Below the pieces are notes generated by a model. It worked only from the letters and a program-made list of their open reading frames with translations. It searched no databases and was not told where the DNA came from. A stretch of 47,323 bases of DNA from Guillardia theta CCMP2712 (lineage: Eukaryota; Protista; Cryptophyta), in contig NW_005434453.1 of the NCBI RefSeq assembly GCF_000315625.1, forward strand, positions 23,414-70,736. Reading direction: 5' to 3'. Both the position numbers and the translations under genes were made by a program. Below are positions 9,849-41,197 of this stretch, one piece after another. The first letter of the stretch is position 1. Each line of letters begins with the position of its first letter.

Positions 9849-12800
9849 TCAATCCTGTAAAGCCTCGGGATGTGACACCGTGGCCTTGGCCTGAGAAAGG
9901 TACTCCCCCGTCTCCTCCGCCGTCCGCGATGGCGCGGCTCCTGCGTCCTCGTGCGCGTCGACGTCCTCGTCGGGGTGCTGGGCCTGCCCCTTCTCGCTCC
10001 CAGGGCCCCCATGCCCACCGTCCGCGACGTACCTGCTGATCCCTCCAGCTATCCTGACCAGCGTCACAAAGGAGAGGATCCGGCCGATCATCATAGTCTT
10101 CGTGCCTTCCTCTTTGCAGCGGTAGTACTGCATCCAAACGCGCCCCATGCAGTGCGTATAGACGAGGTTCCTCTGCTTCGTCGCCTGCAGGGACGTAAAC
10201 TCCAGCACGCTCTTGGATCCCTCTCCTGCTGCTCGCGTGTACCACCTCACCGTCTGCTCCACAGCGTCTGACAGGCTCATGCTCGAGCCCGAGCAAGGCC
10301 CTATGGAGAGCTCGTGGACGGTGAAGCAGCGGCGGACACAGAGGAGACGCGGCGGATCGACAGCTCCTGCGAGTCGGCGTGTAGGTCAAGCTGTCGTCGC
10401 ACAGGAGCTTGACCACGAGGTCGACGGCAGATACCGTCCTGTCGACGTCAGCCGTGGCCTTGGCGTGAGAAAGGTACTCCCCCGTCTCCTCCGCCGTCCG
10501 CGATGGTGCGGCTCCTGCGTCCTCGTGCGCGTCGACGTCCTCGTCGGGGTGCTGGGCCTGCCCTTCCTCGCTCCCAGGGGCCCCCATGCCCACCGTCCGC
10601 GACGTACCTGCTGATCCCTCCAGCTATCCTGACCAGCTTCACAAAGGAGAGGATCCGGCCGATCATCATAGTCTTCGTGCCTTCCTCTTTGCAGCGGTAG
10701 TACTGCATCCAAACGCGCCCCATGCAGTGCGTATAGACGAGGTTCCTCTGCTTCGTCGCCTGCAGGGACGTAAACTCCAGCACGCTCTTGGATCCCTCTC
10801 CTGCTGCTCGCGTGTACCACCTCACCGTCTGCTCCACAGCGTCTGACAGGCTCATGCTCGAGCCCGAGCAAGGCCCTATGGAGAGCTCGTGGACGGTGAA
10901 GGAGGCGGCGGACACAGAGGAGACGCGGCGGATCGACAGCTCCTGCGAGTCGGCGTGTAGGTCAAAGCTGTCGTCGCACAGGAGCTTGACCACGAGGTCG
11001 ACGGCAGATACCGTCCTGTCGACGTCAGCCGTGGCCTTGGCGTGAGAAAGGTACTCCCCCGTCTCCTCCGCCGTCCGCGATGGCGCGGCTCCTGCGTCCT
11101 CGTGCGCGTCGACGTCCTCGTCGGGGTGCTGGGCCTGCCCCTTCTCGCTCCCAGGGCCCCCATGCCCACCGTCCGCGACGTACCTGCTGATCCCTCCAGC
11201 TATCCTGACCAGCGTCACAAAGGAGGGGGTCGGGCCGATCATCATAGTCTTCGTGCCTTCCTCTTTGCAGCGGTAGTACTGCATCCAAACGCGCCCCATG
11301 CAGTGCGTATAGACGAGGTTCCTCTGCTTCGTCGCCTGCAGGGACGTAAACTCCAGCACGCTCTTGGATCCCTCTCCTGCTGCTCGCGTGTACCACCTCA
11401 CCGTCTGCTCCACAGCGTCTGACAGGCTCATGCTCGAGCCCGAGCAAGGCCCTATGGAGAGCACGTGGACGGTGAAGGAGGCGGCGGACACAGAGGAGAC
11501 GCGGCGGATCGATAGCTCCTGCGAGTCGGCGTGTAGGTCAAAGCTGTCGTCGCACAGGAGCTTGACCACGAGGTCGACGGCAGATACCGTCCTGTCGACG
11601 TCAGCCGTGGCCTTGGCGTGAGAAAGGTACTCCCCCGTCTCCTCCGCCGTCCGCGATGGTGCGGCTCCTGCGTCCTCGTGCGCGTCGACGTCCTCGTCGG
11701 GGTGCTGGGCCTGCCCTTCCTCGCTCCCAGGGCCCCCATGCCCACCATCAGCGACGTACCTGCTGATCCCTCCAGCTATCCTGACCAGCGTCACAAAGGA
11801 GGGGGTCGGGCCGATCATCATAGTCTTCGTGCCTTCCTCTTTGCAGCGGTAGTACTGCATCCAAACGCGCCCCATGCAGTGCGTATAGACGAGGTTCCTC
11901 TGCTTCGTCGCCTGCAGGGACGTAAACTCCAGCACGCTCTTGGATCCCTCTCCTGCTGCTCGCGTGTACCACCTCACCGTCTGCTCCACAGCGTCTGACA
12001 GGCTCATGCTCGAGCCCGAGCAAGGCCCTATGGAGAGCACGTGGACGGTGAAGGAGGCGGCGGACACAGAGGAGACGCGGCGGATCGACAGCTCCTGCGA
12101 GTCGGCGTGTAGGTCAAAGCTGTCGTCGCACAGGAGCTTGACCACGAGGTCGACGGCAGATACCGTCCTGTCGACGTCAGCCGTGGCCTTGGCGTGAGAA
12201 AGGTACTCCCCCGTCTCCTCCGCCGTCCGCGATGGCGCGGCTCCTGCGTCCTCGTGCGCGTCGACGTCCTCGTCGGGGTGCTGGGCCTGCCCCTTTCTCG
12301 CCCCCAGTGCTGTTGTCCCTGATCCATGTGCTCATCCCTCCAGCCTTTCTGATGAGTTTTAGAAGCTCACGTTTATGGCCCACCATTAACTTGTATGTGC
12401 CTTCCTCCTTGCAGCGAAAGCTATCAATCGCAGCCTTCCCCTCAACAAGCGATGCAACGAGCTTCTTTTCTTCCTTAGTCTGCAGGGACGTAAACTCCAG
12501 CACTCTTGTAGATCGCCTTCCTGCTGCTCGCGTGTACCACCTCACCGTCTGCTCCACAGCGTCTGACAGGCTCATGCTCGAGCCCGAGCAAGGCCCTATG
12601 GAGAGCTCGTGGACGGTGAAGGAGGCGGCGGACACAGAGGAGACGCGGCGGATCGACAGCTCCTGCGAGTCGGCGTGTAGGTCAAAGCTGTCGTCGCACA
12701 GGAGCTTGACCACGAGGTCGACGGCAGATACCGTCCTGTCGACGTCAGCCGTGGCCTTGGCGTGAGAAAGGTACTCCCCCGTCTCCTCCGCCGTCCGCGA

Positions 12801-22538: not shown

Positions 22539-23717
22539 CTAGATGACATCGAATCTCATCGGCATCTTGAATTGCTGCAGGTGAGCAATGGCCACTTGAA
22601 AATGAGCTCCCTTGGTGACAACAACGGTGTCACCATCTGCATCACTTACATACGAAGATCATCACTTCTCGTGCTCATTGCCAATGCCAAGCGTTCTACC
22701 TGTAAGTAATCTTCATCGTCTGAAGATCCTTCGGTCCCGCCAAAGTCTACTTAACACGACAGCAGTCATGACTTGATGCTTCGGATAATGCTGGACACGA
22801 ACCTTGATTTCAGCCAGAAGGTCTTGATAAGAAGAGACCACAGTCCTCTTGATATCCGATCCAAAAGCGATCTTCACAGGCGTCTCTGAATTCAATTCCC
22901 CCCTCTCCTTGCGTTCCCTCTCCCCCTTCTCCTTGCGCTCCTTCCCCCCTCTCCTTGCGCTCCTTCTCTTGCTTCTCCTTGCGCTCCTTCTCTTGCTTCT
23001 CCTTGTGCTCCTTCTCCCCCTTCTCCTTGCGCTCCTTCTCTTCCTTCTCCTTGCGCTCCTTCTCTTGCTTCTCCTTGCGCTCCTTCTCTTCCTTCTCCTT
23101 GCGCTCCTTCTCTTCCTTCTCCTTGCGCTCCTTCTCTTCCTTCTCCTTGCGCTCCTTCTCTTCCTTCTCCTTGCGCTCCTTCTCCTCTGTCTCCTTGCGT
23201 TGCATCTCTTGCAGCCGTTTCTTGCAATGTCTGCAACCGCACTACCAACAGCACACGTCACAACAGATTCACTCGCATCACTCAAACCAATCATACACCT
23301 CGTCATAGTTACCCCATCCTTGAGCTTTGCAGCACTGAGTCAACCAATCCAATCAATACAAATATCATCTCTACAGACCATGCGCTTTGAAACATGATCG
23401 ATGACTTACATTCTGTGAGTTTCCCAGTGCATAATGTAATCAAAACAAGGTCAGATCAGCAGGAAGATATGTGATGGTGTCAATCTCTTACGCAGCACTA
23501 GTAGATCCATACCAGATGTTGCCATCCGTTGATCAAGACATACCAGAAAAAGCAAAATGAATGTCACTCCCTACCAACCGCATGTTTCAATCGAGATATT
23601 ACTTACATACTATCCAGTTCCATCACACCAGTCCATCCGAGCGAAAACAAAACAATCCCAAGATTACATGTCAGCCATATCGTCCCCTGACCGCATTTCA
23701 GCATCGTCACTTGCCCG
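22539..23717 (-). pseudogene. Gene A: microexon-encoded Cys-rich N-terminus + K/E coiled coil + PB1 domain; 5'-truncated, one frameshift
   Basis: Exons 23715-17 (R), 23607-09 (Y), 23492-97 (CC), 23410-12 (N), 23299-23334 (CCKAQGWGNYDE), then from 23241 CGCRHCKKRLQEMQRKE.... The spliced C-terminus PVKIAFGSDIKRTVVSSYQDLLAEIKTLAGPKDLQTMKITYSDADGDTVVVT...MRFDVI* has the PB1 basic Lys and acidic OPCA motif. Frameshift near 22950. Confidence 0.7.
22900..23195. repeat. 24-bp coding tandem repeat (KEKEEKER)n
   Basis: CTTCTCCTTGCGCTCCTTCTCTTC units; charged coiled-coil or single-alpha-helix-like peptide. Confidence 0.9.
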
Positions 23718-23775
23718 CTATACCGCACCATCCACAGTACATCCGAGCAAATACCGACACATACACAAAAGAATC
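23335..23775 (-). other. Microexon/intron array 1 (truncated)
   Basis: AG|CGG|GCAAGT, AG|TAT|GTAAGT, AG|TGCTGC|GTAAG, AG|AAT|GTAAGT. Confidence 0.7.
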
Positions 23776-24448
23776 AAACGAGGGTGAGAGAGCGAAGGGT
23801 GTTTGAGGTGGTACATACAATCATGTTGGAGCAGCTTATTGGAAGGTAGGTAGGGTCTGGATTGACAGAGGTGGGAGATGTAGTAGGGGGTAGGGTGGGC
23901 ACCTGCTGGCTGAATTAACGGAAGGGGTCAATTGATTGAGGTGGTCAAACTTTCGAAGACTCTCCTGGCTGGAAAGCGAAAATGCTGTTCTGCTCTTGTC
24001 ATCAGGCGATATCAGCGATCGCGGCTTGCTCCTGCTCCTTGGGTCAGCCACCCTGCTCTTCGACTTCATCCCATCCCCCCAACCCGTCCTCCTGCCATCG
24101 CCATGCTCCTCCTTCCTCTTGCCCGGGTCACTCCCCCCCCATCCCTACTCCCTCCTGCTCCCTGGGATGGTTTGGCCTGCGTTGTTCAGTTTTCCACCAT
24201 CCCCGATCTCGCTGGAGGTGAAGTTGTCCTCGTGCAGGAGTGGTGACAGGACCTTCGGCATCAAGTCCATCCGCAGGTCCTCGAGCCTTAGGATGTGACG
24301 ATGACGATGAGCAGCAGGAAGAGGACCGGCTGGCTCTCGCAGCACATCCGGTGGGTAGGCTTCAAGGACCTGACACTGCAGTGGTGGCAGGCTACGGTAG
24401 GGAGCAGTGGTTGGACACTGGGATAGCCTAACGTCATCACTCAGTGAT

Positions 24449-25205
24449 TGTTAGTTTCGATCCTCCTGACTGGTTGTTACCACCCGGTAAGCCTTGAGGC
24501 TTGGGGGACGTGTATCATCTCCCCTTGGAGCAGCAAGGTGAAGCTGCTAGCAATCTCTTTGGTGCCATTGCTGATGTCTGTAAGATCGCTGCTTAAGTTC
24601 TTCTCTGACTACAACCACTGTGACTACCGTCTACAACGATTCTTCATGGATCACAGCAGCTGCTTCAACCTGTCCACTTGTCCGAACTGCAACTTGAGCA
24701 TCTGCAAACCCGCCTCAGTGTCTCGGTGTAAGGTCTCAGCAGGGCAGTGATTTACTATCATTACAGTATTGGCATGTCTGTTCGACTGCCACTCCTTTGT
24801 AGTACCTCATCTGATGTTTCTGCTGGTGCGGAGCACAGCGAGACACTGATATGCAAAGGTGGTCGTTAGGGTCCATGTAGACCCTTCCGACTATCCTGAG
24901 AGTTGTCCTGAGGACCAGAGGACAACATCACTGACAGCCGGCAGTGATGGGGATGTCCGGCCTGAAGCACCTCATCGAACGAGGATGGTGGAGTCCAGGC
25001 TTATGTAGAGGAGACGAGCTGGCGGTAGTATCAGTGGAGACGGTGTATCAACAGCCGAACAAAGGTCTCCTCAACAGAACGTGTGGAGCGACTCGCTCGT
25101 ATTCAGATATGACATTGTTTTCGCACACTGGCTCGTTGTTTTCTTGACGAGATCACTTCCCGTCTCAACACTCTCTAGGGGGAGAGAGAGGAGGCGATCC
25201 TAACA
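24449..25205. mobile_element. Possible LTR-retroelement remnant upstream of truncated gene A
   Basis: TGTTAG...CTAACA inverted termini. No TSD and no recognisable protein motif. Confidence 0.25.
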
Positions 25206-26279
25206 TTTTCTCCCCTCCCTTCCCTTTTCAGTCGAGCAAAGTAAGGCAAGGATATCTAGTTGTATATTTGTTGACACAATGTTGATGTTTCAGGAACATC
25301 ACAAGCATGTTTCAGGAACATCACAAGCATATTTCTTCACTTGAATTCAGTCAAACAAGTTTGAAATAGCGTTGTTCTGAACATGCAATGGATAGTCCAT
25401 GTCTTCATCGGCTACAGCATGCGCACCTCATATCTCCTTGAGGACCTTGTTCACATTCGCTCGCTCTTGCGCCTCAAATCTAGGCTGCCTTGACGCCTGG
25501 GAAGGAAGAGCAGGGGTAGATAATGTCTGACATTCGCCAGCCTGTGTCCCTGCCGTCAGCCGCAACCTCCGCAACATTCTTATCATGGTCTGTTGTGACC
25601 TTGTCGGGTTCCAACAGGCTTGAACCAGTGGCTGTTCTTGCGAGGCAATTTCTCGATCCCTACATCTCTGCAAGCCTTCTTGTTCTGCGAGGACCTCAGC
25701 TCACAATCTCACAGATAGAAATCAAAATGTGCCCACCAACTGTTTCGCGACTCAAGACAGCGGATGATGAAACATCTCCGAGATCAAATCAATGGTAAGC
25801 AAGACGAGATTTGACTTGTTTGAGTCCTGACAAACTTTCTTGCGAGGATGTATGATTGTGTGCGCATGATCACGACGAGCTAGGCCTTTGAGCGAAAGGG
25901 TTTTATCCGAAGATTCCATGTTCTTTGTAGCAACTTGCTACTCATTACACCGGGTAATGAGTAGGACCAAGGAGTAGGACCAAGGTGGGGCGTAACCTCC
26001 GAGGAGGACATTAGACTGAGGCTTTGTAAGGAACGATGGAAAGGCGACATGGAGGAGCGATGATTTGGCGTGATCGTTCTTCCACAAGTGTTTATGAAGC
26101 AGTTATAGAAGCTCAAGCGCTTCCTGTCGTTCTTCTCGCTACGAAACAGATGGAGAGATTTGCAAGCATTCGTCTGTTTGATTCTTTCTCTCTCTGACGT
26201 CCTGTTTGAGTGACATCCATGGCTCATTGGCAACATTTGCTACTGTCCACGAAATCGGGTATTCGCGACAAGCATAAGC

Positions 26280-29200
26280 TTACACTCGACGGAACTCCAC
26301 CAGCAACTCAGGGTATGTCTGTCGGCGATCGTAGACGATGAACTCCCTGTACTTTTCCAAGCACGCTGAAGGATGCGTATCCTGTGTCACCCCAATCACT
26401 GAGTCATGCAGGCGGTCGCTGCCCGGCATTACTGGTGGTCGCCTCGCGTTGTTCATCGCTTGCAGGGCCTCGTAAGGCGTTCCCAGCACAGCTCGCACCA
26501 CAAACATACGACAGATCCCGCGGCTGTCTGGCGTGCAGTACTCGTCGCTCTTGCTCGAGTTCTCAGCTAGGTAGATCCCAGCTCCAAACAAGCCTCCTAG
26601 ACTGCAGACCCGCTCGTCAAGCCCAGCCTTCAAGATAACATCCGCCATGTCGTGTTTGGTGCCATGAAACAGAAACACCTCGTTGCTGGTCTTGTCCTGT
26701 AGGAGCGATCTCTTCATCCAATCGCTATAAGTGCGTACCTCTGTCTTGGGATGTCGTTCGCCCTGTAGCATCATAAGGTAGCCTATAACCTTTCGCTGTA
26801 GGGCATATGCCGACCACAACTCCGAGTGCTCTATACGGAAGACGCGCTCAACCTTGTAGCCTTTATGCTTCAATCCCAAGTTGTCTCTTCCTTGGCCGAT
26901 GTACTGCGGTTTACATGTTGATGTCAACAGCTCTTGTATTCTATCCTTCCACTCGCTCGTTACGTCGACTTTGATGTTTGTGCCAGCAGAGCTTGCTAGA
27001 CCCTGCCAATAGCGGGGAGGTGTAAACACGGCACAACCGTACGCAAGAAGCAGCTTCTCTGTCTCTAAATCTCTCGCTTTCTGCTCAAGTACGGCCTCTT
27101 GCTTGCTCAAGGTCGTCAGCTCCGACTGCACCTGACGCTTTTGTTCCTTCAGAAGCCGCTCTTGTGTGCTGAGCTCTGCCTTCTCCTTCGGGAGTTGCTC
27201 CTTCCTCAGGTTGAAGTGGTATTCCAGTTTCCTTCCTTGAGAGGTGAATGCTCGCTGCTGCTCCACTAGCTGCCTCTCCTCAGACTGCACGTGCTCCATG
27301 CGCTGCTTTATGTCTCTCTCCCTCTCTGCTAGTTCCTCTTGTCTCCTCATGAGCAGCGCAAGCTGTCGATCATGCTCTTCTCGCATGGCAGTGCGCTCCT
27401 TCTCGAGATGTTCGCGCTCGAGTATCATGGCATGACTGAAGTATCGATGTGTGAGAGCTTCGGCTGATGAAAGTCTCTTGCTCGGAACAGGATCGAGAAG
27501 TCTAGCAACAAGATCCTTCGCCTCGCCTTGAAGCCCAGCAAGCAAAGCCATGACGTCGTCACGATGAGTCGGTCTTATCGGAGCTTCTGTCAAGACCTCA
27601 AGCATCACCAAGCCAAACGAGTACATGTCTGATTTGTGCGAGACTTTCATCTTGCCTGTGGAAGGGTTGGTGAGCTCCGGAGCCATGTAGTTCAGCGTGC
27701 CCACGGCAAGAGCAGTGGTCACTGTAGCTGCCAACTCCCTCGCCCGGTCCTCCTGCTCCTTGGACACGTCGAAGTCTGCAATCTGCGGCTCTGCATGCTC
27801 GTCCTTGGAAGTCATCAAGATGTTTGCGGGCTTGATGTCGCAGTGGATGATCCGATTCTGACGCAGGTGCTCGAGCCCCTGCAGCACCTGCATGAGCACC
27901 CTGTGCTTCTGCTGCTCGCTCGGGTCCACATCCTGCATCCACCTACAAAGCGTTCCTCCGACAAGGAAAGGCATCTTCAGGTATCCCTTCATGACCATCG
28001 TGCGAAGCTCGATCTTCTCCTCAATAAAGGCGCTGATCAGCTTCACAATGCAAGGGTGCTCCAGGCGACGCAACATGCTTGCTTCACGTAGGAAATGTTT
28101 TCTGCCGCTCTGACAGACGGTAAGGTTGTACTCCTTGATGACATATTCCTGGCTCCCTTGACTGACGAGGATGACATTATGTCGGGCCCCCATCTGACCA
28201 ACTTGCGACAGACGATCAACGACTGTGAAAATGTCGAGCTTTTCATGCCCGATCAAAACATCACTGTCACCCGCGCCAGCCCCAGGATCTAGCTCTTCCT
28301 TCAACTCCTTCATGTATTCTGGATAGTGACAGACCACACTCCAGAGTCTTTCCTCCAACCTCTCAAGCTCCCTGGTACTTGCCATGAGCTTCACTCTGAC
28401 CACATCCGTCTTGTCCTCGATCTCCTGGCACGCCAGCTTCTTTCTCTTGCTCTTCTCAAAGTCAGATCTAAGATCATACAGCTCGTCTTCCAGATTCTCA
28501 ATTGCTTGCTTGAGCTCTGCCCGGGTGTCCATCAAACGTCGCGGGTCTTCCATACTCTGAAATGTCTTACTGTATCTTTCCAATCCTTTGACGTTTGATA
28601 TCGCACCCAGTTCAAACAACACAGTTTGTGCCCATGACAAAGCCTCTTTTTGGATTGAAAGTAAAGAGCTGAGGGGAAACGATTCGATCAAAGTCGTGTC
28701 TATCAACACCTCCTCCTCAGACACAAACGCGGCTTCAAGAGCCATGTGCGTCTCCGGAAGCACATCTTCCAGCTTGTTCTTGTCACCAATGCTCAACACA
28801 CTAACGCTTCCATCCAGCAAGCAAGACAGCTGACGAAGACTATCAGCATATCGGCTTGCGATCTTCACCCTCTCCTCCCTTGCCGATGCCAATTTCCCAT
28901 TTACCATCTCAACCCAAGCTGACACCATTGATTTTGTTTCGTTCAGCTGATACTGAAGATCATCTGTAGACAAACAGAACGGAGCTGCAGCTTTCGACCC
29001 CCTCGTATCAAGATCACAGCAGCGTAAAACTGCCTCCACGTCTGTGACAAACCTTTCCAACACTTGCTTGTACTCCAATAGGCGGGCCCGACAACCACCT
29101 TCGAGTGCAGCAACGAGCTCGTTGGATGCCTGAATCAGTGCAATCCTCGTCTCGTTCCGTCTGTTTATGCTCTCACTCTCTTGCCTGGCTCTCTGCATCA

Positions 29201-31544
29201 ACTCAGCTTGCTTGGAATCAAGCTCATCCTGCAATGACCGCACTTGACTCCAAGCCTGCTGCATACGCATGTACGCTTCGTGACCCTCGCTGCTGAATAT
29301 TTCCGTCAACTCAACCAGCAATCTGAGCGCGTCCTCTCCTGAGGCGAGCTCTTGGCTGCATATCTTCTCCGTCAGGTCGTGCAGCGACAACATCGCACGA
29401 CCATGCAGGCCCAACGACGACCCATGCCGCATGGCGACCTTGACCGCAGATCGAAGAGTGCTGCACTTGTTCATGTTTTCAGAGCGCTCCCTCTCCCGCT
29501 CATCTCTTTCCTTTTGCTCCTGCTCCTCCTGGTGTCTGGCTTGTGTGGCCTGCTCTTCTCGTTTGAGCCGTTCCTTGCAATGGCTGCATCCATACTAGCA
29601 ACATCATCCGTCAGTCGCATCAAAGACACACTTCAAGCACCTCATCGTATGCCGACCATCCTCTGGACTTGGAGCACTAAAAACCGAAGTCAATCGCCAT
29701 ATTCAGCAAAAGAGCCATCGCTCGCAATCTGCTCAGCTTACATTCTGTCATTGTTGTTTTCACCAGCAATGAAAACCAACGCAAACACAAAGTCAGGAGA
29801 GCATCAAAGAGAGTGAATAGGAAAGTCTTACACAGCACTGATGGAAAAAATAGATGTTTGAACCACAGTCATAGGATAACGCAAGACATATGTCAGTTCC
29901 TATGTCCCCTGACCGTATCTTTCATGTTTGTTACTTACATACTATCCAGCCACATTCACGACCCATGTGATGGTAATCCGAAAGAAAGACAAAACTCGTC
30001 AGTCCCTATGAACCCCTGACCGCATCTTTCATCATCGTTACTCACATGCTATCAAGCCCCATTCACGACCCGACCGATGACAAACCGAAAGAGTTGCAAA
30101 ACCAAATTTCAGCCATCGTTCCCTGACCACACCTTTCATGTTTGTTACTTACAAGCTTTCCAGCCCCATTCGTAGCCAATCCGACGATCCACAAAATTGC
30201 AAGGAACATGTCAGTCCCTATCGATCCCTGACCGCATTTTTCAATCAAGATACTCACAATCTATCCAGCCCCATTTTGTTTCACCGGGTGAAAACAAAAC
30301 ACACAAAAAGTAGATGTCAGCCATATCGTTCCCTGAGAGCATGGTACATATTTCGTCACTTACCCACTATCCAGCATCATCGACAGTCCATCCGAGAAAT
30401 AACCGATAAGATTTGCAAAATGAAATGTCAGCCAATCGTCTTCTGATCGCATCATTGAAAATGCTACTCACTCCCTATCCAGATAATCGTTTCAAATCCC
30501 GGCAAGTAACCGATGGGAGTGATTTCGTTTTCGATAAAACACGTCAGCCAATCGTCCACTCAGCACATCATATGATATGAAAAAACACTTACTCCCTTCG
30601 AAGACAGATTCCATCCAAACAAGCCAGGAAAGAGTAGCAATTGCAAATCAAATGTCAGCCAACCGTCCCTTGAGGGAATGATCGGCTTCACCGGGCAAAA
30701 CTTTGCTTCGCCAATGTGTTCTTCCTCCTTGTAAATACAATTCTTGCAGGTGCCATCTTCATCAAGATGGAAGGTCTACATGATTCGTCAGTCTTGTCGT
30801 TCCCTGATGTTTCATTATTGTTACTTACATTCTATCCAGCCACATTCATGACCCGTCCGATGAAGCACTCACAGAATTTCGATGAAAAACCCACAGATTT
30901 GCGGAAAACACGTCAGCCAAACATCCCATGACCGCATCCTTCATGATTTGTAACTCACCGTCTATTCAGTCCAATCAATGACCCATCCGATGACAAAACC
31001 GAAAAATACACCAACATTGTCAGTCAGCAAATCGTTCTTTGACCGCATTTCCATGATTGTTGCTTACCAGCTGTCCAGTCCAATCAACAGCAGATCCGAT
31101 GAAAAAACCGAAAAATGCACGAAATTCGTTAGTCCTATGGATCACTCAAGGAATGATCGGTTTTACGGGGCAAAACTTCGCTTCGCCAATGTGTTCTTCC
31201 TCCTTGTAAATACAATTCTTGCAGGTGCCATCTTCATCAAGATGGAAGGTCTACATGATTCGTCAGCCCGATCGTCCTCAAACAAGATGATTGCGAATAC
31301 TACTCACTGCCTATTCAGACAATTGTTTCCAATCCCAGCAAGCAACCGATGGGAGTGATTTTCGTTTCGAAACAAGGAAAAACATGTCAGCCAACCAACC
31401 GTCCCCTGATCGCATCTTTCATCATCCTCACTTACATTCTATCCAGCCCCATACATATCCCAACCGACGTGAACAGACCGAAAAATTCACGAAGAATGTA
31501 AGTCCCTATCGTCCCCTGACTGCATTCTTCAATCAAGATACCGC
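26280..31544 (-). CDS. Gene B: zinc-finger/microexon N-terminus + coiled coil + Ser/Thr kinase + coiled coil + PARP-family ADP-ribosyltransferase
   Basis: Main exon 26280..29594 has VIKEY, HCDIKPANIL, DFD and GTLNYMAPE (kinase) and LFHGT, GIYLAENSSKSDEY and REFIVY (PARP H-Y-E). Upstream exon 29641-29676 (CSKSRGWSAYDE) and the microexons splice in frame. Start codon not located. Confidence 0.85.
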
Positions 31545-31630
31545 CTGTAAGCCGCATAGGCATAGTGATGTCAGCAAAAGCTGTCCCTCAAGACTTACTC
31601 ATCTTACGCATCTGCTGCTGTCTTCGGTAC
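29677..31630 (-). other. Microexon/intron array 2 (14 single-codon exons, one 6-nt exon, two 84-nt zinc-finger exons)
   Basis: Each ~100-120-nt unit reads (Y/A)AG|NNN|GTRAG on the minus strand (one GTATC donor), usually with a CTGAC branch site. ZnF exons at 31167-31250 and 30692-30775. Confidence 0.8.
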
Positions 31631-32500
31631 CGGGGCAGACCTCGATCTAAAGCATCTCCAGTAAGAGGGTAATCAATCCAACACTGATGTGGTGTGATGA
31701 GGGACTAAAATGAAGGAGCAAGTGAGGACGTGCAGGAGGAAAGTCAGCATATCCATCACACATGCAGGTCAAGCAAACAAGCATCGCATCGCTTATGCTC
31801 CCTTGCCTTGCAGTCTTGACAGTTCCTCGGCATGACGGGACAGCGGAGGAAAGGCTGTTTTTTTGACCCGCAGGGAGGTGAGCAGGGGGTGGACAGGGCT
31901 CAGAGCAGGGGGTCCAGATCTGGTCCAGATGGAGTCGGGGTCGATGTGGCTCCACCAGCTATCGTGGTTACACACAAGTCTAGCATTCTTGGTGACAAAC
32001 GGGTTGAAAGGGGGCGGCTGAGTAAAACATGATGGGGACTCTAATGCCGGGCCGTCAACCTCCGGGGCCCGGGGAGCCACCTGGGGACCATCGACGCAAG
32101 TCGAGAGTCGATCTCTTAGCCCCTCGTTGACTCCTTGCCCTCATTCAAGAGAGGCCGAATCTCCTCCTCCGGCGGCGGATCTGCCGGAGCTCTTCCTGGA
32201 TGGTGATGAACTCTGAACCTCAAGGAGACGATGACATCCTGCGTGGGGGAGCAGGAGCAGGAAAGCAGGAGGCGATGGAGAGCCGGAGAAGTTGATTTAG
32301 GAAGAAGAAGCAAATCAGAGAGAAGAGACAGCGAAGGCCGGGCGGAAGCAGCTGGATACAGGACGCGGCTGATATGGTAGCGGCCATCACCAACTTGACG
32401 AGATTTGATTCATATGGGGCCCTCAGTTTGACCTGATACTTTGTTGAACACGGTCTGCTTCTGCCTCCTGACCTTGTTCCTTGCCCTGCACGTGAGCCAA

Positions 32501-33810
32501 CTCAAGCACGTCAGAGTCGACCTCTGCTCGAGCACGTCAGAGTCGTCCTCTGCTCGAGCACATCAGAGTCGTCCTCTGCTCGAGCACATCAGAGTCGACC
32601 TCTGCTCGAGCACATCAGAGTCGACCTCTGCTCGAGCACATCAGAGTCGTCCTCTGCTCGAGCACATCAGAGTCGTCCTCTGCTCAAGCACGTCAGAGTC
32701 GTCCTCTGCTCGAGCACATCAGAGTCGACCTCTGCTCGAGCACATCAGAGTCGTCCTCTGCTCAAGCACGTCAGAGTCGTCCTCTGCTCAAGCACGTCAG
32801 AGTCGTCCTCTGCTCGAGCACATCAGAGTCGTCCTCTGCTCAAGCACGTCAGAGTCGTCCTCTGCTCGAGCACATCAGAGTCGACCTCTGCTCGAGCACA
32901 TCAGAGTCGTCCTCTGCTCAAGCACGTCAGAGTCGTCCTCTGCTCAAGCACGTCAGAGTCGTCCTCTGCTCGAGCACATCAGAGTCGACCTCTGCTCGAG
33001 CACATCAGAGTCGACCTCTGCTCGAGCACATCAGAGTCGTCCTCTGCTCGAGCACATCAGAGTCGTCCTCTGCTCAAGCACGTCAGAGTCGTCCTCTGCT
33101 CGAGCACATCAGAGTCGACCTCTGCTCGAGCACATCAGAGTCGTCCTCTGCTCAAGCACGTCAGAGTCGTCCTCTGCTCAAGCACATCAGAGTCGTCCTC
33201 TGCTCGAGCACATCAGAGTCGTCCTCTGCTCAAGCACGTCAGAGTCGTCCTCTGCTCGAGCACATCAGAGTCGACCTCTGCTCGAGCACATCAGAGTCGT
33301 CCTCTGCTCAAGCACGTCAGAGTCGTCCTCTGCTCAAGCACGTCAGAGTCGTCCTCTGCTCGAGCACATCAGAGTCGACCTCTGCTCAAGCACATCAGAG
33401 TCGTCCTCTGCTCGAGCACATCAGAGTCGACCTCTGCTCAAGCACATCAGAGTCGACCTCTGCTCAAGCACATCAGAGTCGACCTCTGCTCAAGCACATC
33501 AGAGTCGACCTCTGCTCAAGCACATCAGAGTCGTCCTCTGCTCGAGCACATCAGAGTCGTCCTCTGCTCGAGCACATCAGAGTCGACCTCTGCTCGAGCA
33601 CATCAGAGTCGACCTCTGCTCGAGCACATCAGAGTCGTCCTCTGCTCGAGCACATCAGAGTCGACCTCTGCTCAAGCACATCAGAGTCGACCTCTGCTCA
33701 AGCACATCAGAGTCGTCCTCTGCTCAAGCACATCAGAGTCGACCTCTGCTCAAGCACATCAGAGTCGACCTCTGCTCAAGCACATCAGAGTCGACCTCTG
33801 CTCAAGCACA
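32501..33810. repeat. 26-bp minisatellite, ~50 units
   Basis: Unit CAGAGTCG(A/T)CCTCTGCTC(G/A)AGCAC(A/G)T. Stop-free on the + strand, producing ORF 32441..33898. Confidence 0.95.
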
Positions 33811-33898
33811 GTCAGCCAGCTGCTGTAACTTGTTCGACGATTGCGATTCGAGAGCCTTAGTTGCACCACCTGAGCCCATTGTGCATCCGAATGGTTAG

Positions 33899-34078
33899 TG
33901 TTACGAAGTGGATCGTATCTTAGCACGTCGTGGGAAAGGTCGTCGTGTGCAATACTTGATCAGATGGAAAGGTTATGATAATACTGCGTCTGATTCTTGG
34001 TTGTCATTCCGTGAATCGAAGACGCCATTTCTTCGTCAATTGATGCGTGAGTTTAATTTGACTAATTCTAATTCCTGA
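33899..34078 (+). pseudogene. Chromodomain (probably a chromovirus/retroelement integrase tail)
   Basis: CYEVDRILARRGKGRRVQYLIRWKGYDNTASDSWLSFRE... is a canonical chromodomain pattern. It is in frame with ORF 32441..33898 across a single TAG and is missing from the ORF track. Confidence 0.8.
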
Positions 34079-34302
34079 TGCAGCGAAGTTCATCGAGATG
34101 TTTCTCAGATGATGCGCTTGGGAGCGTAATGATAGGAGTTGCTTGAGCGGTCACGTATACTTCAGTCACCTAGCTTTTTTTTATCCTGTCGATTTGGTCA
34201 TAAATCTATCCTAACATTCTATACGTTCGGCGAGCGCGGTTGTGTTGAGGTTCCTGTTTGCTTGCTTAACACAAGTTCGACAGTTGGTTCAAGTTCACAG
34301 AG

Positions 34303-37300
34303 TCAAGCTAGATCATCAGGGTTGTCAATGCCTGAACGTATCTTTGACTGCAGCAGGCTGATACGGTCAAGAATGCTGTTGAGCAGGTCCTTTTGCAGAT
34401 GTAACGACCTGAGAAACGGGTGCTCCACTGGCTCCACGCATGTCAAGGCCATGTCAACCGCTACCTCATGAAATACGACGCCTCCCCGGTAAACCCTCGC
34501 CTGCACTGCTGCCACCAGCGCCTCCAGCCCTGACACATGCAAACCACCACGGTCCTTCTCTTGCTGCTGTTGCTCTTGCTGCTCCCTCTTTGCTTGAACC
34601 TCCAAGGGCTTTGAGAATGACGCGAGATACGTCCAGTCGACCTTGACCTTGTTGGCAGCTTCACTTGTCTCCTTCTCTAGCTCCGCAATTCTCTTCCACC
34701 AGTCTTCACCCCCCTTGTCGCCCTTCCAGCCTGACTCTGACTCCAAGTCCTTTGAGTCTCGACTTGCTTCATACAGCACCGGCACCAGCACAGGTATGAT
34801 GTACTTCCCTGCCTCACACGCCCGAGCAAACTCTCTCCTGCAGTTGCCGCTCTTGACGTACTTGTCGCTCATAAAGACTACAAACACCTCGCAGCGAGAC
34901 ACCCCGAGCTCCATCTTCTGCATGTGATCTTCCCCGGGGTTGATCCCTCCCTCCACGTCGAACCAGCACTGCAGGCTTGTCTGCTCCTCGATCCGCCGCT
35001 TCACCTCCCTCACCATCTTCTGCGTCGAGTTGTCGTGCCCCCACTGGTAGCTCAAGAACACCTGCGGCGGCGTGACGTCCAGCACGTCCATCTCCCTCTG
35101 ACATCCGTCGCAGTAAATCTTAGCCGTCAGGTCGCGAGCGAGCATGCTCAAGCACTTGGGTCGGCTGAAGAAGTGCGGGACTCTCTTGTCCTTCAAGCAA
35201 GACGGACACGGGGAGCTCGAGCCATTGAACGCCAGCACCTCCTCCACGGTTGTCGTATGACCCCTTGTGCAAGTGATTGCTTTGATCATGATCTTGTGTT
35301 TGATGACATCTTCCTGCTCCAGCTCTTGCTGCATGTCTGTCATACCCTTCCTTTCTTTATCTAGCGCTGCCTTGATCTCCGACCGATCAAACCTGCCCAC
35401 GGCTCGATCGCCTTGGGAGGCAGGTTGAGACTCAGACCTATCATGCAAACAAGCTTGGCACAGAAGCTCGTTCTGACTGGTGACCTCGTACAAGTCTTCG
35501 AAGCTTCCTCGTCCCTGATGCAGCTTCTTGATGATGCCGTCATACAACGTTCGCATCGAGCCTTGATCATTCTCCTTGTACTGATGGAAGATCCGGTATC
35601 GCTCCATCCCTTGTATCTCCTGCGGCCACCACTCGTTGAACCTGTTCGTCAGCTTGATCTGCTTGTCGTAGTAGTCTGTCAATACGACGGGGATGATAAT
35701 TGCTTCGCTCGCTGTCAATCTGTTCCATAACTTGCTGAAGCTACTTTCTCCTTGAATGGGTCCCTGCTCATCAACACACTCTGTCGATATACACAAGATG
35801 TTCACGAGACATTCATCACCAGCACCTCCACGTTCGTCACATGGATGTGTCTGGCAAGTAAGACCTAGAGGGAGGTTCTCCGCCTTGTAAAGCTTCTTCA
35901 CCTTTCTTTCAATATCCAGCCCACATGCTCTTGACCTCTCTCCTTGCGTGAAGATCCCTATTTGCACGGCCTCTTTGCCTGAGCTCTCCTTGTCGCTTCT
36001 CCTTCGCTTCATCCCCGGGAAGAACGCCTCCAGTTGCTTCAAGTCCTCTTGCAAGTTCTCGATCTGCTGCCTCGTCGACGCATCAGCTCTCAGCACGTGC
36101 TTGTCATTGTCTTCCCGCCAGCTCACCAGCAGCGTCCGGCCCCAGCCCTTCATCACCGCCATAGAGCCGCTGCAGTCTACCTCAAAGTGTCGAGCAGCGC
36201 ACAGCACGACCAGCCTGTCGATGAAGCCTGCGGGGAAAATGTTGTACTCGCACTCGACAGATGCGCACAGCGACTGCTTGTCCTTGTCCGTCACTGCTCG
36301 CTTGTGCTCATGCGTGAACGACGGGATGATGCCGGGACACAGCAGCTCTCTGCTCTTGTTGTCTGTATCCTTCAAGTCCTTCATCCCCTCGCCCAGGAAG
36401 TGCGCCAGATCGCAGCCTCGCAGCAGAGCCACCGCCTCCTGCACCTCCACATGGCTCTTGATGAAGCCTACCTCTTCTGATCTTGATGTCTTGTCTGTCT
36501 TCGCATTGCGCCAGAAGTCGCTGTCTTGCTGGGGCCACAAGTACTCCAACATGTCCTCGTCTATGATACCCAGGTGTAGCAGCTTCTTCGTCTTCTTGGA
36601 CTTGGTCGGGTCCTGCTGGAAGAAGTCGAGCAGGTGCTCCCAGTCATGTCGCATCACGCCCTTGAACACGTCGATCATCCACACGGGATCGATGAAGACC
36701 GTGTCCTCGACGGAGTACTTGCCTAGGTCTCTCTTGCTTTGATCGGCGCTCAGCTCATGACCGAAGTACTTGAGCACGCCCATGTCGTGCAAGAAGCTCG
36801 TCGCCACCTTGTGCTCTTTCTCGCTGACCCCTGACTCTCTCAACATCTCCTTGTACTCCTCTACCTTGACGTACGAGACAGACCCTGACTTTCGCTTCTC
36901 CACAGCCTCTCTCAGTCTCAGATAAGGTCTAGGGATTCTTTCCTCCCACCACAGCAGCTCTTTTGCAGTCTTGCACACAGATCGCCGCAGCTCCTTCACC
37001 CCCTGTCCCTCAAGACAGTTCACCCGGAAGCTCTCGCCTCCGTTGATGACGTGCAACGGCAGGATATGCAAATCTTCATCCTCTGCCATCTTCTTCAGCT
37101 CCTCTTCCACACATGCCTTCACCTCCTCACACTGATCCGTCACCTCGCTCTCCCCGACAAGATCGATGTGCGTTGCTACGAGCAACACGCTCGATCCCGG
37201 CACTCGCGCTTGCGTAGCTCGCAGCCATGTAGCGATCATCATCTTCAGCTCCTCCATGCTCTGCTTGTCTCGCTTCCCCCTCACGTTCCACACCAGCAGG

Positions 37301-40300
37301 TACAAGGCCCGCCTCACGATGAAGTACTGGTTCGTCTTGGCGTAGATCTGCTGCCCCCCGAAGTCCATCACGTCACACGTCAGCCCGTCAGCGTCCTCAG
37401 GCTCCCACTCGTGCAGGTCTATCCCGATCGTCCTCCTGTCTACCTCGATCTTGTCCGCCTTGTCCTTGTCTGACCTCAGAGCTCTCAGCACGCTCGTCTT
37501 GCCTGCCTCTCCGTTGCCTATGAGGATCAGGTTGATCCGCTTGTTCGCCTCGCTGTCTCTCTTGACGCTCTGCAGGTACGTGAAAGCAGCTGCCCCTCCC
37601 TGACTGGCGATCTCAGGGGGAGGCAGCTGCAGCCTGACGCAGCTCTCACACTTGACCTCCTGCAGGCTAGACTCCATGCTGCACAGCTCGTCCAAGGGAA
37701 AGTGGGAGAGGCTGGGGTTACCGGACACGTCGATGACTTTGAAAGCAACGCCGAGCTTGGAGATCCATCGAGGCAGGCTCTTCATCCTCAGATCTCGTAT
37801 CACATATCGTTTCATCCCATCTGTCCGCAAAGACATGTTGAGCGTGCCCGTCTTGCTGTCGTAGCAGCTCCCGAGCTCTCCGCCCGACAGGAGCTGCTTC
37901 ACCTCTTCGACAGCAGAGCTATCCATCTCTTGCATCCCGAAGATGTAGTGGCACTTGACTAGGTCCAGTCTCTCGGCAAACGGCTTCATCACGTTGTTAG
38001 CGTATTTGCGGAACTTCTCGATCTTGGCGATGGCGTCCTGCCTACTGGGTCTTGACGATACAAGATCTTGCTCAAGGTTGTGCACGCAGGAACGTCGATC
38101 CTTGCAGTGCTGGCACATGATTATTTGCCTTTCATCTTCAGGTTTGCCGTCGAAGTAGCAAACGCAGCACTAGAAAAAAGATCAGCCGCAACCCAGACCA
38201 TGCCAGCAAAGACCCGAATGGCAAAATACATGTCAGCCAATCATTCTCTGAGCACATCATATGATATGACACTTACTCCCTATGAAGAACGAAACAAGGA
38301 AAAACCAGGAATTTTGAAAAACAAATTCAGTCCAATCATCCCCTGACCGCATGTTTTATGACTCGTAGCTTACCAGCTGTCAAGCCCAATCAACATCCCA
38401 TCCGATGAATATACCGAAAAATACACGGAAATCGTCAGCCAGCCAATCGTTCGGAATGACCGCATCTTTTATGATTTGTCACTTACCCACTAGCCAGTCC
38501 AATGAACATCCCATCCGATACAAAAACCGTAACATACACGAAAATCGTCAGCCAGCCAATTTTCCCCTTATCCAATCTTTCATCATTGTTACTTACATCC
38601 TATCCAGCCCAATCAACATCCCATCCGACGAATAATCGAGAAAAACACAAAATTATGTCAGCCAATCGCCCCATGAATATGACCGCAAATTTCATATTCT
38701 TCACTTACTTGCTATGCAGCCCCATTCCGTCCATCCGAGCAATAACCGGTAAGATTTGCAAAATACTTGTCAGCTCAATCATTCCCGACCACATCATTCA
38801 TTTGTTACTCACTCCCTATCCAGCCCATTAAAAAACAAACAAGCCATCCGACGACAGAACCGAAAAATGAACAAAAACAGTGAGCCAATCGTCCCCTTAG
38901 CGAATGATCGGCTTTACCGGGCAAATCGCTTTGTCGATGTGATCATCTTTGTTACAGCCACACCATTCGCAGTTGTCATTGTCGTCCGGATCGAAGGTCT
39001 ATATGATTTGTCAGTCCGATCTTCCCCTGATCACATGTTTCATCAATTGTAACTTACCAGCTGTCCAGCCCAATCAACATCCCATCCGATGCAAAAACCG
39101 AAAATACACGAAAATTGTAAGCTAATCGTTCCATGACCGCATCTTTCATGATAGTTACTTACATACTATCCGGCCCAATCAACAGTCGGTGAATAACCGA
39201 GAAAAACAACAACACAAAATTTTGTCAGGCAATCGTCCCATGCATATTTTATCATCCTCACTTACCCCCTATCAAGCCCCATTCACAATCCAGCCGATAC
39301 AAAGACCAAAAAACGCAAATCCACATGTGAGCCAATCTTTCCCGATATTTGAAGATGGTTACTTACATCCTGTGCAAGCCCCAATCGTAGCAAATCCGAT
39401 GAGAACCCGATAAAATCACAAGGTACACGTCAAATCCCTATCGTCCCCTGACCGCATCTTTCATTATTGTTACTTACATTCTATTCAGCCACATTCATGA
39501 CCCATCCGATGAGACACCACAAAAGTGCAAAGAACACGTCAGCCATATCGTCCCCTGACCGCATTTCATCATCGTTACTTACCCGCTATACCGCCCCATC
39601 CACAGCACATTCGAGCAAATACCGACACATACACAAAATAAATGTCAGTCCAATCATCCCCTTCCTGACCGCACCTTTCATCATCGTTACTTACCCGCTA
39701 TACCGCCCCATCCACAGTACATTCGAGCAAATACCGACACATACACAAAATGATTGTCAGTCCAATCATCCCCTTACCGCATGTTTTATGACTCGTAGCT
39801 TACCAGCTATCAAGCCCAATCAACATCCCATCCGATGAAAATACCGAAAAATGAACGAAAATCGTCAGCAAGCCAATACCGCATCTTTTACGATTTGTGA
39901 CTTACCCGCTATTCAGCCTCATTCACAACCCAGCCGATGAACACCCACAAGATTTGCAAAGCTACATGTCAGTTCAATCATTATCTGAGCGAACGGATGC
40001 TTACGTAGCAGAACTTTCTATCTGTGAGGTGCTCTTGTTCAAGCTTCGAACAGGTCGCACACCGTCCTTGGGCTCCAGCTTTGAAGGTAGCCTGTTGTAG
40101 AATATTAACCCAATTGTTCCCTGACCGCATCTTTCATCATTGTTACTTACATCCTATCCAGCCCAATCAATAACCCATCGGATGATAAACCGAAAAATGC
40201 ACGAAAATCGTAAGCCAGTCAGTCGTCCCCTGACCGCATCCTTCATGATCGTGACTTACCAGCTGTCAAGCCCAATCAATGACCCATCCGATGAAAAACC

Positions 40301-40756
40301 GAGAAAAATACACCAATATTGTCAGCCAGCAAATCGATCCCTGACCGCATCATATGGTATGACACTTACTGCCTATGAAGACAGATTCCATCAAAACAAG
40401 CCAAGAAAGAGTAGCAATTGCAAAGCAAATGTCAGCCAACCATCCCCTGACCGCATCTTTCATGATTGGTCACTTACATCCTATCCAGTCCAGTCAACAA
40501 CCCATTCGATGAGAAAACCGAAAAATATACGAAAAATGTCGGTCAATCGTTCCTTGATGTCAGCATCGTTGCAAATGTTACTCACTCCCTATCCAGACCA
40601 TTGTTTCCAATCCCAGCAACAAAACGATGGAAGTTGAGAAAAGAAAGCACGTCAGCCAGCGAATTGTCCCGATGATAAACCCAAAAAATTACAAAGAGCA
40701 TGTCAGTCTAATCGTTCACTGAACGAGCATATGCTGCACAGACTGATGCTTACCGC
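34303..40756 (-). CDS. Gene C: zinc-finger/microexon N-terminus + LRR + Roc GTPase + COR + CxxC region + TIR (Roco-TIR)
   Basis: Main exon 34303..38169 starts CCVCYFDG.... It has a few LRRs (IDVSGNPSLSHFP), GNGEAGKTS, RRTIGID, DFGGQ, ATHID, COR (FLHDMGVL, IDPVW) and TIR (VFLSYQW, CWFD, FVVFMSDKYVKSGNCRREF, IIPV). Microexons splice in frame. Start uncertain. Confidence 0.9.
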
Positions 40757-40863
40757 CTTCCGAATAACATCATCGCAATTCATGGCAGAGCGTAAAACAC
40801 ACAAAGTCAGATGACGCCTACTAGAAGCTACTCAAATTACGCATCTCGTGCTGTCGTCGGTAC
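38170..40863 (-). other. Microexon/intron array 3 (21 single-codon exons, two zinc-finger exons)
   Basis: Same unit as arrays 1 and 2. ZnF exons at 40005-40091 and 38918-38998. Confidence 0.8.
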
Positions 40864-41197
40864 CTTTATTGACCACGATCTGGAGAAACACAAGTAAGGA
40901 GGTCAAGAAAAGTGTTGGGAGGAAGCGAAGGAGCCGCCAAGAAAGGAGTTGAATGATGGAAGGAACAGATGCGGGGGAGCAAAGCAAACATCTCCATCAT
41001 CAAGCATGTAACTGAAGGTAACAGCATCTCATCCCAGCTGCTCCTTGCCTTGCAATGAAGGCAGTACTTCAGCATCGCTGTCGGCTTCAGAGGACTTATC
41101 GGGCAGTTATCGGGCAGTTATCGGGCAGTTATCGGCAGTTATCGGGTTGATCACTGGGCGGACCACCAGCTATCGCGGTTACGTACAGCGATACGTA

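Follow-up and report, generated by a model that had tools for sequence, protein, structure and literature searches.

Arrays of single-codon exons in a Guillardia theta gene family are mosaics, probably formed by recombination between homologous introns

The stretch of Guillardia theta CCMP2712 DNA analyzed here, hereafter the window (47,323 nt; contig NW_005434453.1, labeled C221, positions 23414-70736), carries three genes between 23.1 and 41.1 kb, every one on the minus strand. They have a common N-terminal module in which the linkers between Cys/His-rich segments are encoded one residue per exon, while the Cys/His segments themselves are ordinary exons. Cassettes made up of a 3-nt exon and its flanking intron sequence recur in different order within and between arrays, both in the window and elsewhere in the genome (87 Mb, 669 contigs searched). 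The best explanation is recombination or gene conversion in the germline between the homologous introns, and we consider it likely to be correct. Exchange between single-codon arrays appears to be new, and no description of runs of single-codon exons, or of their exchange, was found in the literature searched.

The N-terminal module consists of two short exons and Cys/His-rich exons of 81-87 nt, with runs of 3-nt exons between them. An array of ~105-nt units lies upstream of the long exon in genes 1, 2 and 3. Each unit is an intron of the form GTAAGT...YAG, homologous to the others and present on the minus strand only, with exactly 3 nt separating neighbors. At 200 of ~222 intron starts from 21 loci, the exon immediately before is exactly 3 nt long and in phase 0. 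Pfam gives no match for the Cys/His exons, so "zinc finger" is used only as a description of their C-x2-C...H...C pattern. In gene 3, exon 1 (41049..41075, minus strand as for all gene features below) comprises ATG and eight codons (M-x3-C-x2-C-K) and is followed by a GC-AG intron, as placed by an alignment of the 5' modules of 11 paralogues and by an open spliced model. The 11 aligned regions have in common exon 1 (M-x3-C-x2-C-Q/K), the GC-AG intron with its conserved splice pair (CAG/GCAAGG), and an exon 2 of 39 nt, which in gene 3 (40841..40879, 13 codons) is supported by a joint at 40840/40841 in RNA-type contigs and by a conserved 3' splice site. An ATG at 40842-40844 was considered as the start of gene 3 and rejected, because it is out of frame and runs into a stop; the start is placed at exon 1, position 41075. 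The gene 3 array (38277..40756) holds 21 single-codon exons, which spell the three linkers AGDALD, RLRRNDGYL and GQDWLG, and the Cys/His exons 40005-40091 and 38918-38998. It leads into a last exon (34306..38169) with ROC, COR-A/B and TIR domains (Pfam).

The 3-nt pieces are spliced and translated exons, and their splicing was observed for gene 3. Four sequencing runs were aligned to 37900-41000 (3,101 nt): X1 and X2 of DNA type, X6 made up of RNA-type contigs, and X15 of raw RNA. The RNA nature of X6 is our guess, supported by the absence of its joints from X1 and X2. Codon-to-codon joints in the gene 3 array occurred only in X6 contigs and in neither DNA run; they connect the second Cys/His exon with CTG and TAT; GGG with GAT and AAT; CTG with CGG and the first Cys/His exon; and the first Cys/His exon with GAT, CTG, GCA, GAT, GGA, GCG and exon 2 (ending at 40841). 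The raw RNA run X15 contributed 6 reads to this region, and the splicing evidence thus comes from the X6 contigs. Two further joints, one in X1/X2 from 38248 to 40720 (side of 28 nt) and one in X6 from 38169 to 40033 with 37 foreign letters, were attributed to paralogues or to cross-links of repeats and were set aside. In the models of genes 2 and 3 no stop interrupts translation between the ATG and the long open reading frames (ORFs), with all single-codon exons included. No stop codon was found among the 200 3-nt exons of the 21 loci, where 13.5 were expected (P about 9e-7), and none of these exons encodes Cys. As the unit is a spliced 3-nt exon, every event that affects a unit adds, removes or replaces whole residues in frame.

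A preliminary description of this DNA had listed six matches between units of different arrays or array positions, all of which proved real (80-97% identity over 66-130 bp). Matches were scored by local alignment and the background was taken from random cassette pairs; as these had a median identity of 69% and a 95th percentile of 80%, the listed matches are well above chance. The CGG unit of gene 1 (23660-23773) is 91% identical over 114 bp to the gene 3 unit at 39530-39641 (93% over 105 bp by blastn) and 87% identical to a second CGG unit at 39642-39750. This gene 1 cassette, termed "B" type, is common to gene 3 and five other loci. The two CGG cassettes of gene 3 form a tandem duplication encoding two Arg codons (39554..39775; Tandem Repeats Finder (TRF) period 112, 2.0 copies, 95%; 97% over 100 bp). 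A CTG cassette at 39757..39877, again in the gene 3 array, is a dispersed copy of 38327-38447, 1.4 kb apart (94.2% over 121 bp), and the pair forms a starred clade in the cassette tree described below. The GCA cassette of gene 3 (40327..40450) is kin to the GGA cassette of gene 2 (30545-30673; 84.6% over 130 bp), and a further unit occurs at about 30470, 31305 and 40585 (80-85% over 66-109 bp). In array 2 a Cys/His exon is duplicated together with its edges (30675-30791 and 31150-31266, 96.6% over 117 bp), and the two encode identical peptides. The exon loss proposed near 40665 was borne out by a fused intron of 165 nt (40589..40753), across which an X6 contig splices GCG straight to GGA. Hidden Markov models of intron halves show that it begins with a 5' half, followed by the initial 20 nt of a 3' half; next come the end of a second 5' half and then a 3' half. 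Two introns were thus joined, and ~56 nt with one codon lost.

The ~105-nt introns (for example 40154-40259) look like two related halves of ~50 nt, ...GGGGACGATTGGCTGAC and ...GGGATGTTGATTGGGCTGGATAG. The short introns that precede long exons correspond to the first half only, followed by ~12 nt and AG; on this ground CTGAC may serve as branch point. No significant fold of the intron RNA was obtained (Z-scores -1.7 to +0.85), and neither an alifold consensus nor a terminal repeat was found.

To relate cassettes across loci, units were located with 5' intron halves as anchors and 200 cassettes were cut, each spanning the codon, the 60 nt before it and the 46 nt after it; trees were computed from the flanks only, with the codon excluded. 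On the tree of the 32 window cassettes the gene label required 10 changes vs. 10.3 for shuffled labels (P = 0.54), and the codon label 20 vs. 24.05 (P = 0.004). Four starred clades of one cassette type were recovered, three of which mix genes: gene 3 with gene 2 in two GGA/GCA types, and gene 3 with gene 1 in CGG. With all 200 cassettes the array label required 138 changes vs. 160 ± 3.2 shuffled, where strict clustering by locus would give ~21, and the codon label 113 vs. 159 ± 2.6. For neighboring cassettes of an array, the closest relatives belong to different loci. Cassettes thus group by cassette or codon type and not by gene, and strict clustering by locus was not found.

The absence of clustering by gene is one of several results that bear on descent by vertical inheritance alone, in which an ancestral long array would have changed by local duplication, deletion and point divergence, with similar cassettes being positional orthologues. 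Parts of the data have the appearance expected from this explanation. Gene 2 and the caspase gene at locus L002 on scaffold C308 are collinear over ~790 bp, the first GCG and last GGA cassettes remain attached to conserved flanks, and insertions suffice to reconcile the order in which genes 2 and 3 carry their shared types. However, the identity between gene 2 and L002 drops abruptly from 97-100% to 57-80% within intron sequence, and tracts of 105-158 bp with 100% identity stand in surroundings of 55-70%. Such tracts were collected by an ungapped X-drop search for patches of at least 80 bp and at least 96% identity whose 80-nt flanks were both less than 80% identical. The search returned 48 patches, 38 of them between loci, with a median length of 104 bp; ten patches between loci were at least 100 bp long and 100% identical.

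The clearest patch in the window is the AAT cassette of gene 3 (39438..39564). These 127 bp, comprising the AAT codon with 84 nt of upstream and 40 nt of downstream intron, are 100% identical to L002:3831-3957, with flanks of 61-62% identity. In gene 2 a block of four cassettes (GGA GGA TGG ATT; 30242..30673) corresponds over 430 bp to L002:3962-4389 with 96-98% identity, bordered by 57-80% identity on one side and by non-homology on the other. At L002 the 127 bp identical to gene 3 directly adjoin the 430 bp similar to gene 2, and the patch aligns in register with the CTT cassette of gene 2.

Mosaics of this kind could in principle be chimeras assembled from mis-joined repeat reads, since the arrays are repetitive and C308 is a small scaffold (23 kb). 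We regard this as extremely improbable. Units differ from each other by 20-30%, the patches are shorter than a Sanger read, and the gene 2/C308 block is 96-98% and not 100% identical. Contigs of an independent run from 2021 match 38349-40748 with three small differences and reproduce the junctions of the 127-bp patch in both gene 3 and C308. Its gene 3 context was confirmed by X1 record 4 and X2 record 13, which are independent DNA contigs, and its C308 context by X1, where a loose end at 39564 continues into L002-specific sequence.

Array order, which the preliminary description had noted to differ between arrays, is not conserved across the genome. Three patches with 98.7-100% identity are common to a ROC-COR-TIR gene (L003) and a kinase-RING gene (L015), where they lie on the same strand but follow one another in exactly the opposite order, and the order concordance of reciprocal best cassettes between arrays was only 0.54-0.62. 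These values were obtained after concordance over all cassettes had proved to be confounded by the interchangeable members of one large group, cluster A; the calculation was redone with reciprocal best hits and with cluster A left out. Reversed near-identical cassettes and low concordance again speak against vertical inheritance, which together with local duplication appears to fit the data very poorly, and we consider it very unlikely that it suffices by itself.

The limits of the patches are informative about the unit of exchange. Exactly one 3-nt exon is contained in 46 of the 48 patches, which begin between +18 and +58 of one intron and stop between +12 and +48 of the following one. The zone of the junctions is the most conserved part of the intron, its 5' part. 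Many patches measure almost exactly one period with equal start and end phase, and this, together with the 37 copies of cluster A at 12 loci, would also be expected from a mobile cassette, a ~108-bp element (3' intron part, codon, 5' intron part) that inserts into introns of the family by a transposition-like or reverse-splicing route and creates a new 3-nt exon each time. Against such an element, three unit queries against the genome found the units confined to the N-terminal module of this family and none in unrelated genes; tracts range from one to four units; and their ends are not sharp but spread over ~40 nt, although periodic homology would hide short duplications. Moreover, the cassette at L002 appears to replace that of gene 2 in register and not to be inserted, and the introns lack a significant fold or terminal repeat. 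A mobile element thus seems to fit poorly, and we rate it as improbable.

A codon-centered unit of one period, junctions in a conserved block, spread ends and apparent replacement in register are together the pattern expected of homology-driven exchange. Under recombination between homologous introns, the introns would supply long homology, above all in the block from +19 to +50, and arrays would recombine both in register, inside one gene, and ectopically, from gene to gene. The copied piece would extend from about +20 to +45 of one intron, through the single codon, to about +15 to +48 of the next, which is one period. Cassettes would be gained and lost through unequal exchange or replication slippage, which may account for the tandem CGG pair and for the fused intron of 165 nt. 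Gene conversion over short tracts would replace between one and four cassettes by copies from a different array; candidate cases are the CGG cassette of gene 1, the dispersed CTG copy, and the tracts of 127 and 430 bp in common with C308. Each event would then change the protein by whole residues without frameshift, and selection for variable loops would maintain the arrangement. Superimposed on exchange, the codons, including the variable codons of exons 1 and 2, turn over far faster than their flanks. In young copies the codon travels with its flanks.

It had been proposed that crossover or conversion edits the protein by whole codons, as a DNA-level diversifier. The one-unit patches and the spliced 3-nt units bear out the first part; for a dedicated or somatic diversifier there is no evidence. 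Programmed or somatic diversification would mean cassette conversion during vegetative growth that yields clonal receptor variants, in the manner of the variable lymphocyte receptors of lampreys or chicken immunoglobulin. Very recent transfers with 100% identity, immune- or death-type effector domains and a conserved intron block at the junctions would suit it, as would one low-depth X2 contig that lacks one CGG unit. This contig, however, can be explained by collapse of the 95% tandem repeat, and its 112-bp skip (39563 to 39676, with 42 shared letters at the joint) was not accepted as copy-number variation. X1 and X2 otherwise reproduce the reference array; they probably derive from the same strain, and contigs drop rare variants. 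In addition, the arrays examined all belong to complete genes, each of which has a 5' module and an effector ORF of its own, and no promoter-less donor banks were present. We judge somatic diversification to be highly improbable. A bolder form of the germline explanation holds that one-codon exons exist in order to make loops recombinable residue by residue, that the +19 to +50 block is a recombination signal, and that conversion among at least 20 arrays is ongoing and possibly mitotic, giving repertoires specific to a lineage or clone; this we hold to be quite unlikely.

Exchange of cassettes accounts for only part of the variation among codons. Outside cluster A, the codon was shared in 26 of 30 cassette pairs with flanks at least 95% identical, and in 8 of 24 pairs with flanks 90-95% identical. 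Cluster A itself comprises 37 cassettes at 12 loci (L001-L015) with near-identical flanks and 13 different codons, and in most of its pairs the codon differs whatever the flank identity; none of its members occurs in the three window arrays. The difference per site is ~0.5 in the codon vs. ~0.06 beside it, so that codons diverge about ten times as much as their flanks. A similar excess is found in exons 1 and 2 of the 5' module, with per-site differences of 0.28 and 0.15 among paralogues and 0.05-0.06 in the adjoining introns; over the whole module (40841-41075, L001-L015) these exons are 3-6 times more diverged than the introns, while their Cys codons are invariant. Because codons and exons 1 and 2 outpace their flanks, substitution under diversifying selection, or conversion in very short tracts, must have a share no smaller than that of cassette shuffling. 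The variable residues may be under strong diversifying selection; alternatively, conversion may homogenize the introns while the codons are preserved by selection; or conversion tracts may be very short and hidden by the invariant flanks at the splice sites.

Several points weigh against recombination between introns as the source of the mosaics, or limit its extent. The codon difference of ~0.5 per nt where flanks are at least 90% identical is left unexplained by exchange. The same discrepancy is seen within one pair of genes, since gene 1 and its paralogue on C269 are ~93% identical over 350 bp, yet carry TAT and ACC, respectively, at one exon. The cassette trees are based on 106 nt and are weakly resolved. 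No exchange event was caught in progress, both DNA data sets show the reference order, and donor and recipient cannot be distinguished with certainty, the direction of any one transfer being conjectural. Most gene 3 cassettes are unique, with about 70-78% identity to anything else, and exchange must therefore be sporadic. Finally, the cassettes common to genes 1, 2 and 3 are 85-93% identical, which suggests that sharing among the window genes is older, and insertion plus duplication would account for their differences in order (X-h-H in gene 3; X''...h...H-X in gene 2). For these two reasons the clearest exchange involves other scaffolds. The proposal that cassettes are reshuffled between the three genes accordingly holds for their sharing across effector types and is not supported for recent mutual exchange, the freshest being with C308.

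The window genes are best explained as members of a G. theta family of at least 20 genes of receptor or death-domain type with a common Cys-rich N-terminal module. The three unit queries found ~21 places in the genome, always in arrays of the same family, and 20 loci were retrieved. ROC-COR-TIR effectors were identified in gene 3, L003, L009 and L017 by Pfam, and in L001, L006, L007, L010 and L011 by DNA identity of 87-95%. Gene 2 and L004 encode kinase-PARP, L002 a caspase, L008 a caspase with a kinase, L015 kinase-RING and L019 a kinase. Five paralogues elsewhere match 2.7 kb of the 3' body of gene 3 with 93-95% identity (blastn), and nine loci match its 5' module (40669-41065, 0.4 kb) with 88-91% identity; between these conserved flanks, the arrays of gene 3 and its paralogues are non-collinear and range from 0.8 to 2.4 kb. 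At L014 (C261:35500-45000) a block of three cassettes (GCG CCA CTT) and a longer exon is present three times with 98-99.7% identity, and is a multi-unit tandem duplication.

Gene 2 has exon 1 at 31807-31833 and exon 2 at 31608-31646 (both from the spliced model). Its array (29742..31544) contains 14 single-codon exons, one 6-nt exon and the Cys/His exons 31167-31250 and 30692-30775, and its last exon (26283..29594) encodes protein kinase and PARP catalytic domains (Pfam, model). The view of the gene 1 array had to be corrected: it is short (23173..23717; CGG, TAT, a 6-nt CC exon, AAT and a 36-nt exon, leading into a coiled-coil ORF made of a 24-bp repeat) and 5'-truncated relative to the C269 paralogue. 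Family homology stops at 23773, and no 5' module was located for gene 1, the family exons 1 and 2 being missing. Judged from its sequence, gene 1 looks like a deletion remnant, or may use a new first exon, possibly ATGATT/GTATGT near 23823. About 450 bp upstream of gene 1, 24210-24409 is 95-99% identical to sequence that at L002, L004 and L010 lies ~2.3 kb upstream of the gene start.

Some repeats and motifs were recorded near the arrays. An 18-nt motif, CCAGCTATCG[CT]GGTTAC, occurs at 31955-31972 and 41166-41183, ~90-120 nt upstream of the ATG of genes 2 and 3, and its exact form was found at none of 20 other loci. Upstream of gene 3 it is adjoined by an 11-nt repeat, TTATCGGGCAG, with 4.7 copies (41096-41146). 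Between genes 2 and 3, 32501-33815 is made up of 50.5 copies of a 26-bp unit (95% matches) within a plus-strand ORF of 485 amino acids. A tandem repeat of ~576 bp with at least four copies, the first three 98-99% identical, extends over 10253-12548 (minus-strand matches at 10253, 10828, 11404, 11980 and 12548); it has an AG-ACG-GTRAG site in every copy and is unreported by TRF, its period exceeding 500. Neither a gene 3-specific exon nor a degenerate intron block, each used in one metagenome scan, gave any match.

Parts of this system have parallels elsewhere. Introners, as found in Micromonas, Aureococcus and dinoflagellates, are near-identical short introns across unrelated genes that add an intron without an exon. 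The G. theta units resemble them in forming families of near-identical short introns in one genome, and differ in being confined to one protein module, arranged in tandem, and each accompanied by a codon. Interlocus gene conversion, as in MHC and antigen families, leaves short near-identical tracts in diverged paralogues, mosaic genes and conflicting segment phylogenies. The near-identity tracts with abrupt drops described above (127 bp, 430 bp and the 48 patches) are of this type, but the tract is quantized to one period of intron, codon and intron, the driving homology is intronic, and the coding payload is a single codon.

In the ROCO genes of brown algae, exons encoding leucine-rich repeats (LRRs) are duplicated and shuffled with their introns within and between genes (Teng et al. 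2024, PMC11378527; Zambounis et al. 2012, cited there); diversifying selection has been inferred for them, and somatic recombination proposed but never shown (PMC11378527). As in that family, the genes are candidate immune receptors with a ROC-COR core (here gene 3), the variable N-terminal part is built from many exons of the same phase and constant length, and exon plus flanking intron is duplicated or exchanged, leaving non-collinear arrays (here by the patch, order and tree tests). There, however, a 72-bp exon encodes a 23-residue LRR; in G. theta a 3-bp exon encodes a single residue, and the repeated homologous part is the intron and not the exon. Within the window ROC-COR is found only in gene 3, and Pfam found no LRR in the N-terminal module upstream of it. 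The module is instead Cys/His-rich and occurs also on kinase-PARP, caspase and kinase-RING genes, and the organism is a cryptophyte.

Runs of micro-exons are known from the micro-exon genes of Schistosoma, in which symmetrical micro-exons (3-81 bp, multiples of three) are described as encoding most of a variable protein that is presumed, as here, to lie at an immune or arms-race interface (bioRxiv 10.1101/2023.06.21.545858). That account differs from our findings in that introns are long (up to 5 kb), variation is ascribed to alternative splicing and not to cassette exchange from gene to gene, and runs of twenty 3-nt exons are not described. To our knowledge the introns of these Schistosoma genes are not known as tandem homologous units.

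All cases that we know of in which immune-type receptors undergo exon shuffling or gene conversion involve modules of tens of residues. In G. theta a single codon is the exchanged module, and it is the introns that contain the homology presumed to drive the exchange. An otherwise baffling layout, with about twenty 3-nt exons in a run, would thereby acquire a rationale, the introns acting as recombination scaffolds through which the protein is edited in frame, residue by residue. A practical consequence is that gene predictors blind to 3-nt exons will annotate the N-termini of this family wrongly. If, as we think quite unlikely, the arrays are recombinable by design, each lineage or clone would have its own receptor repertoire. 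As a young and fast-evolving cryptophyte receptor family with TIR, PARP, caspase and RING effectors, these genes may serve as a model for innate immunity in protists.

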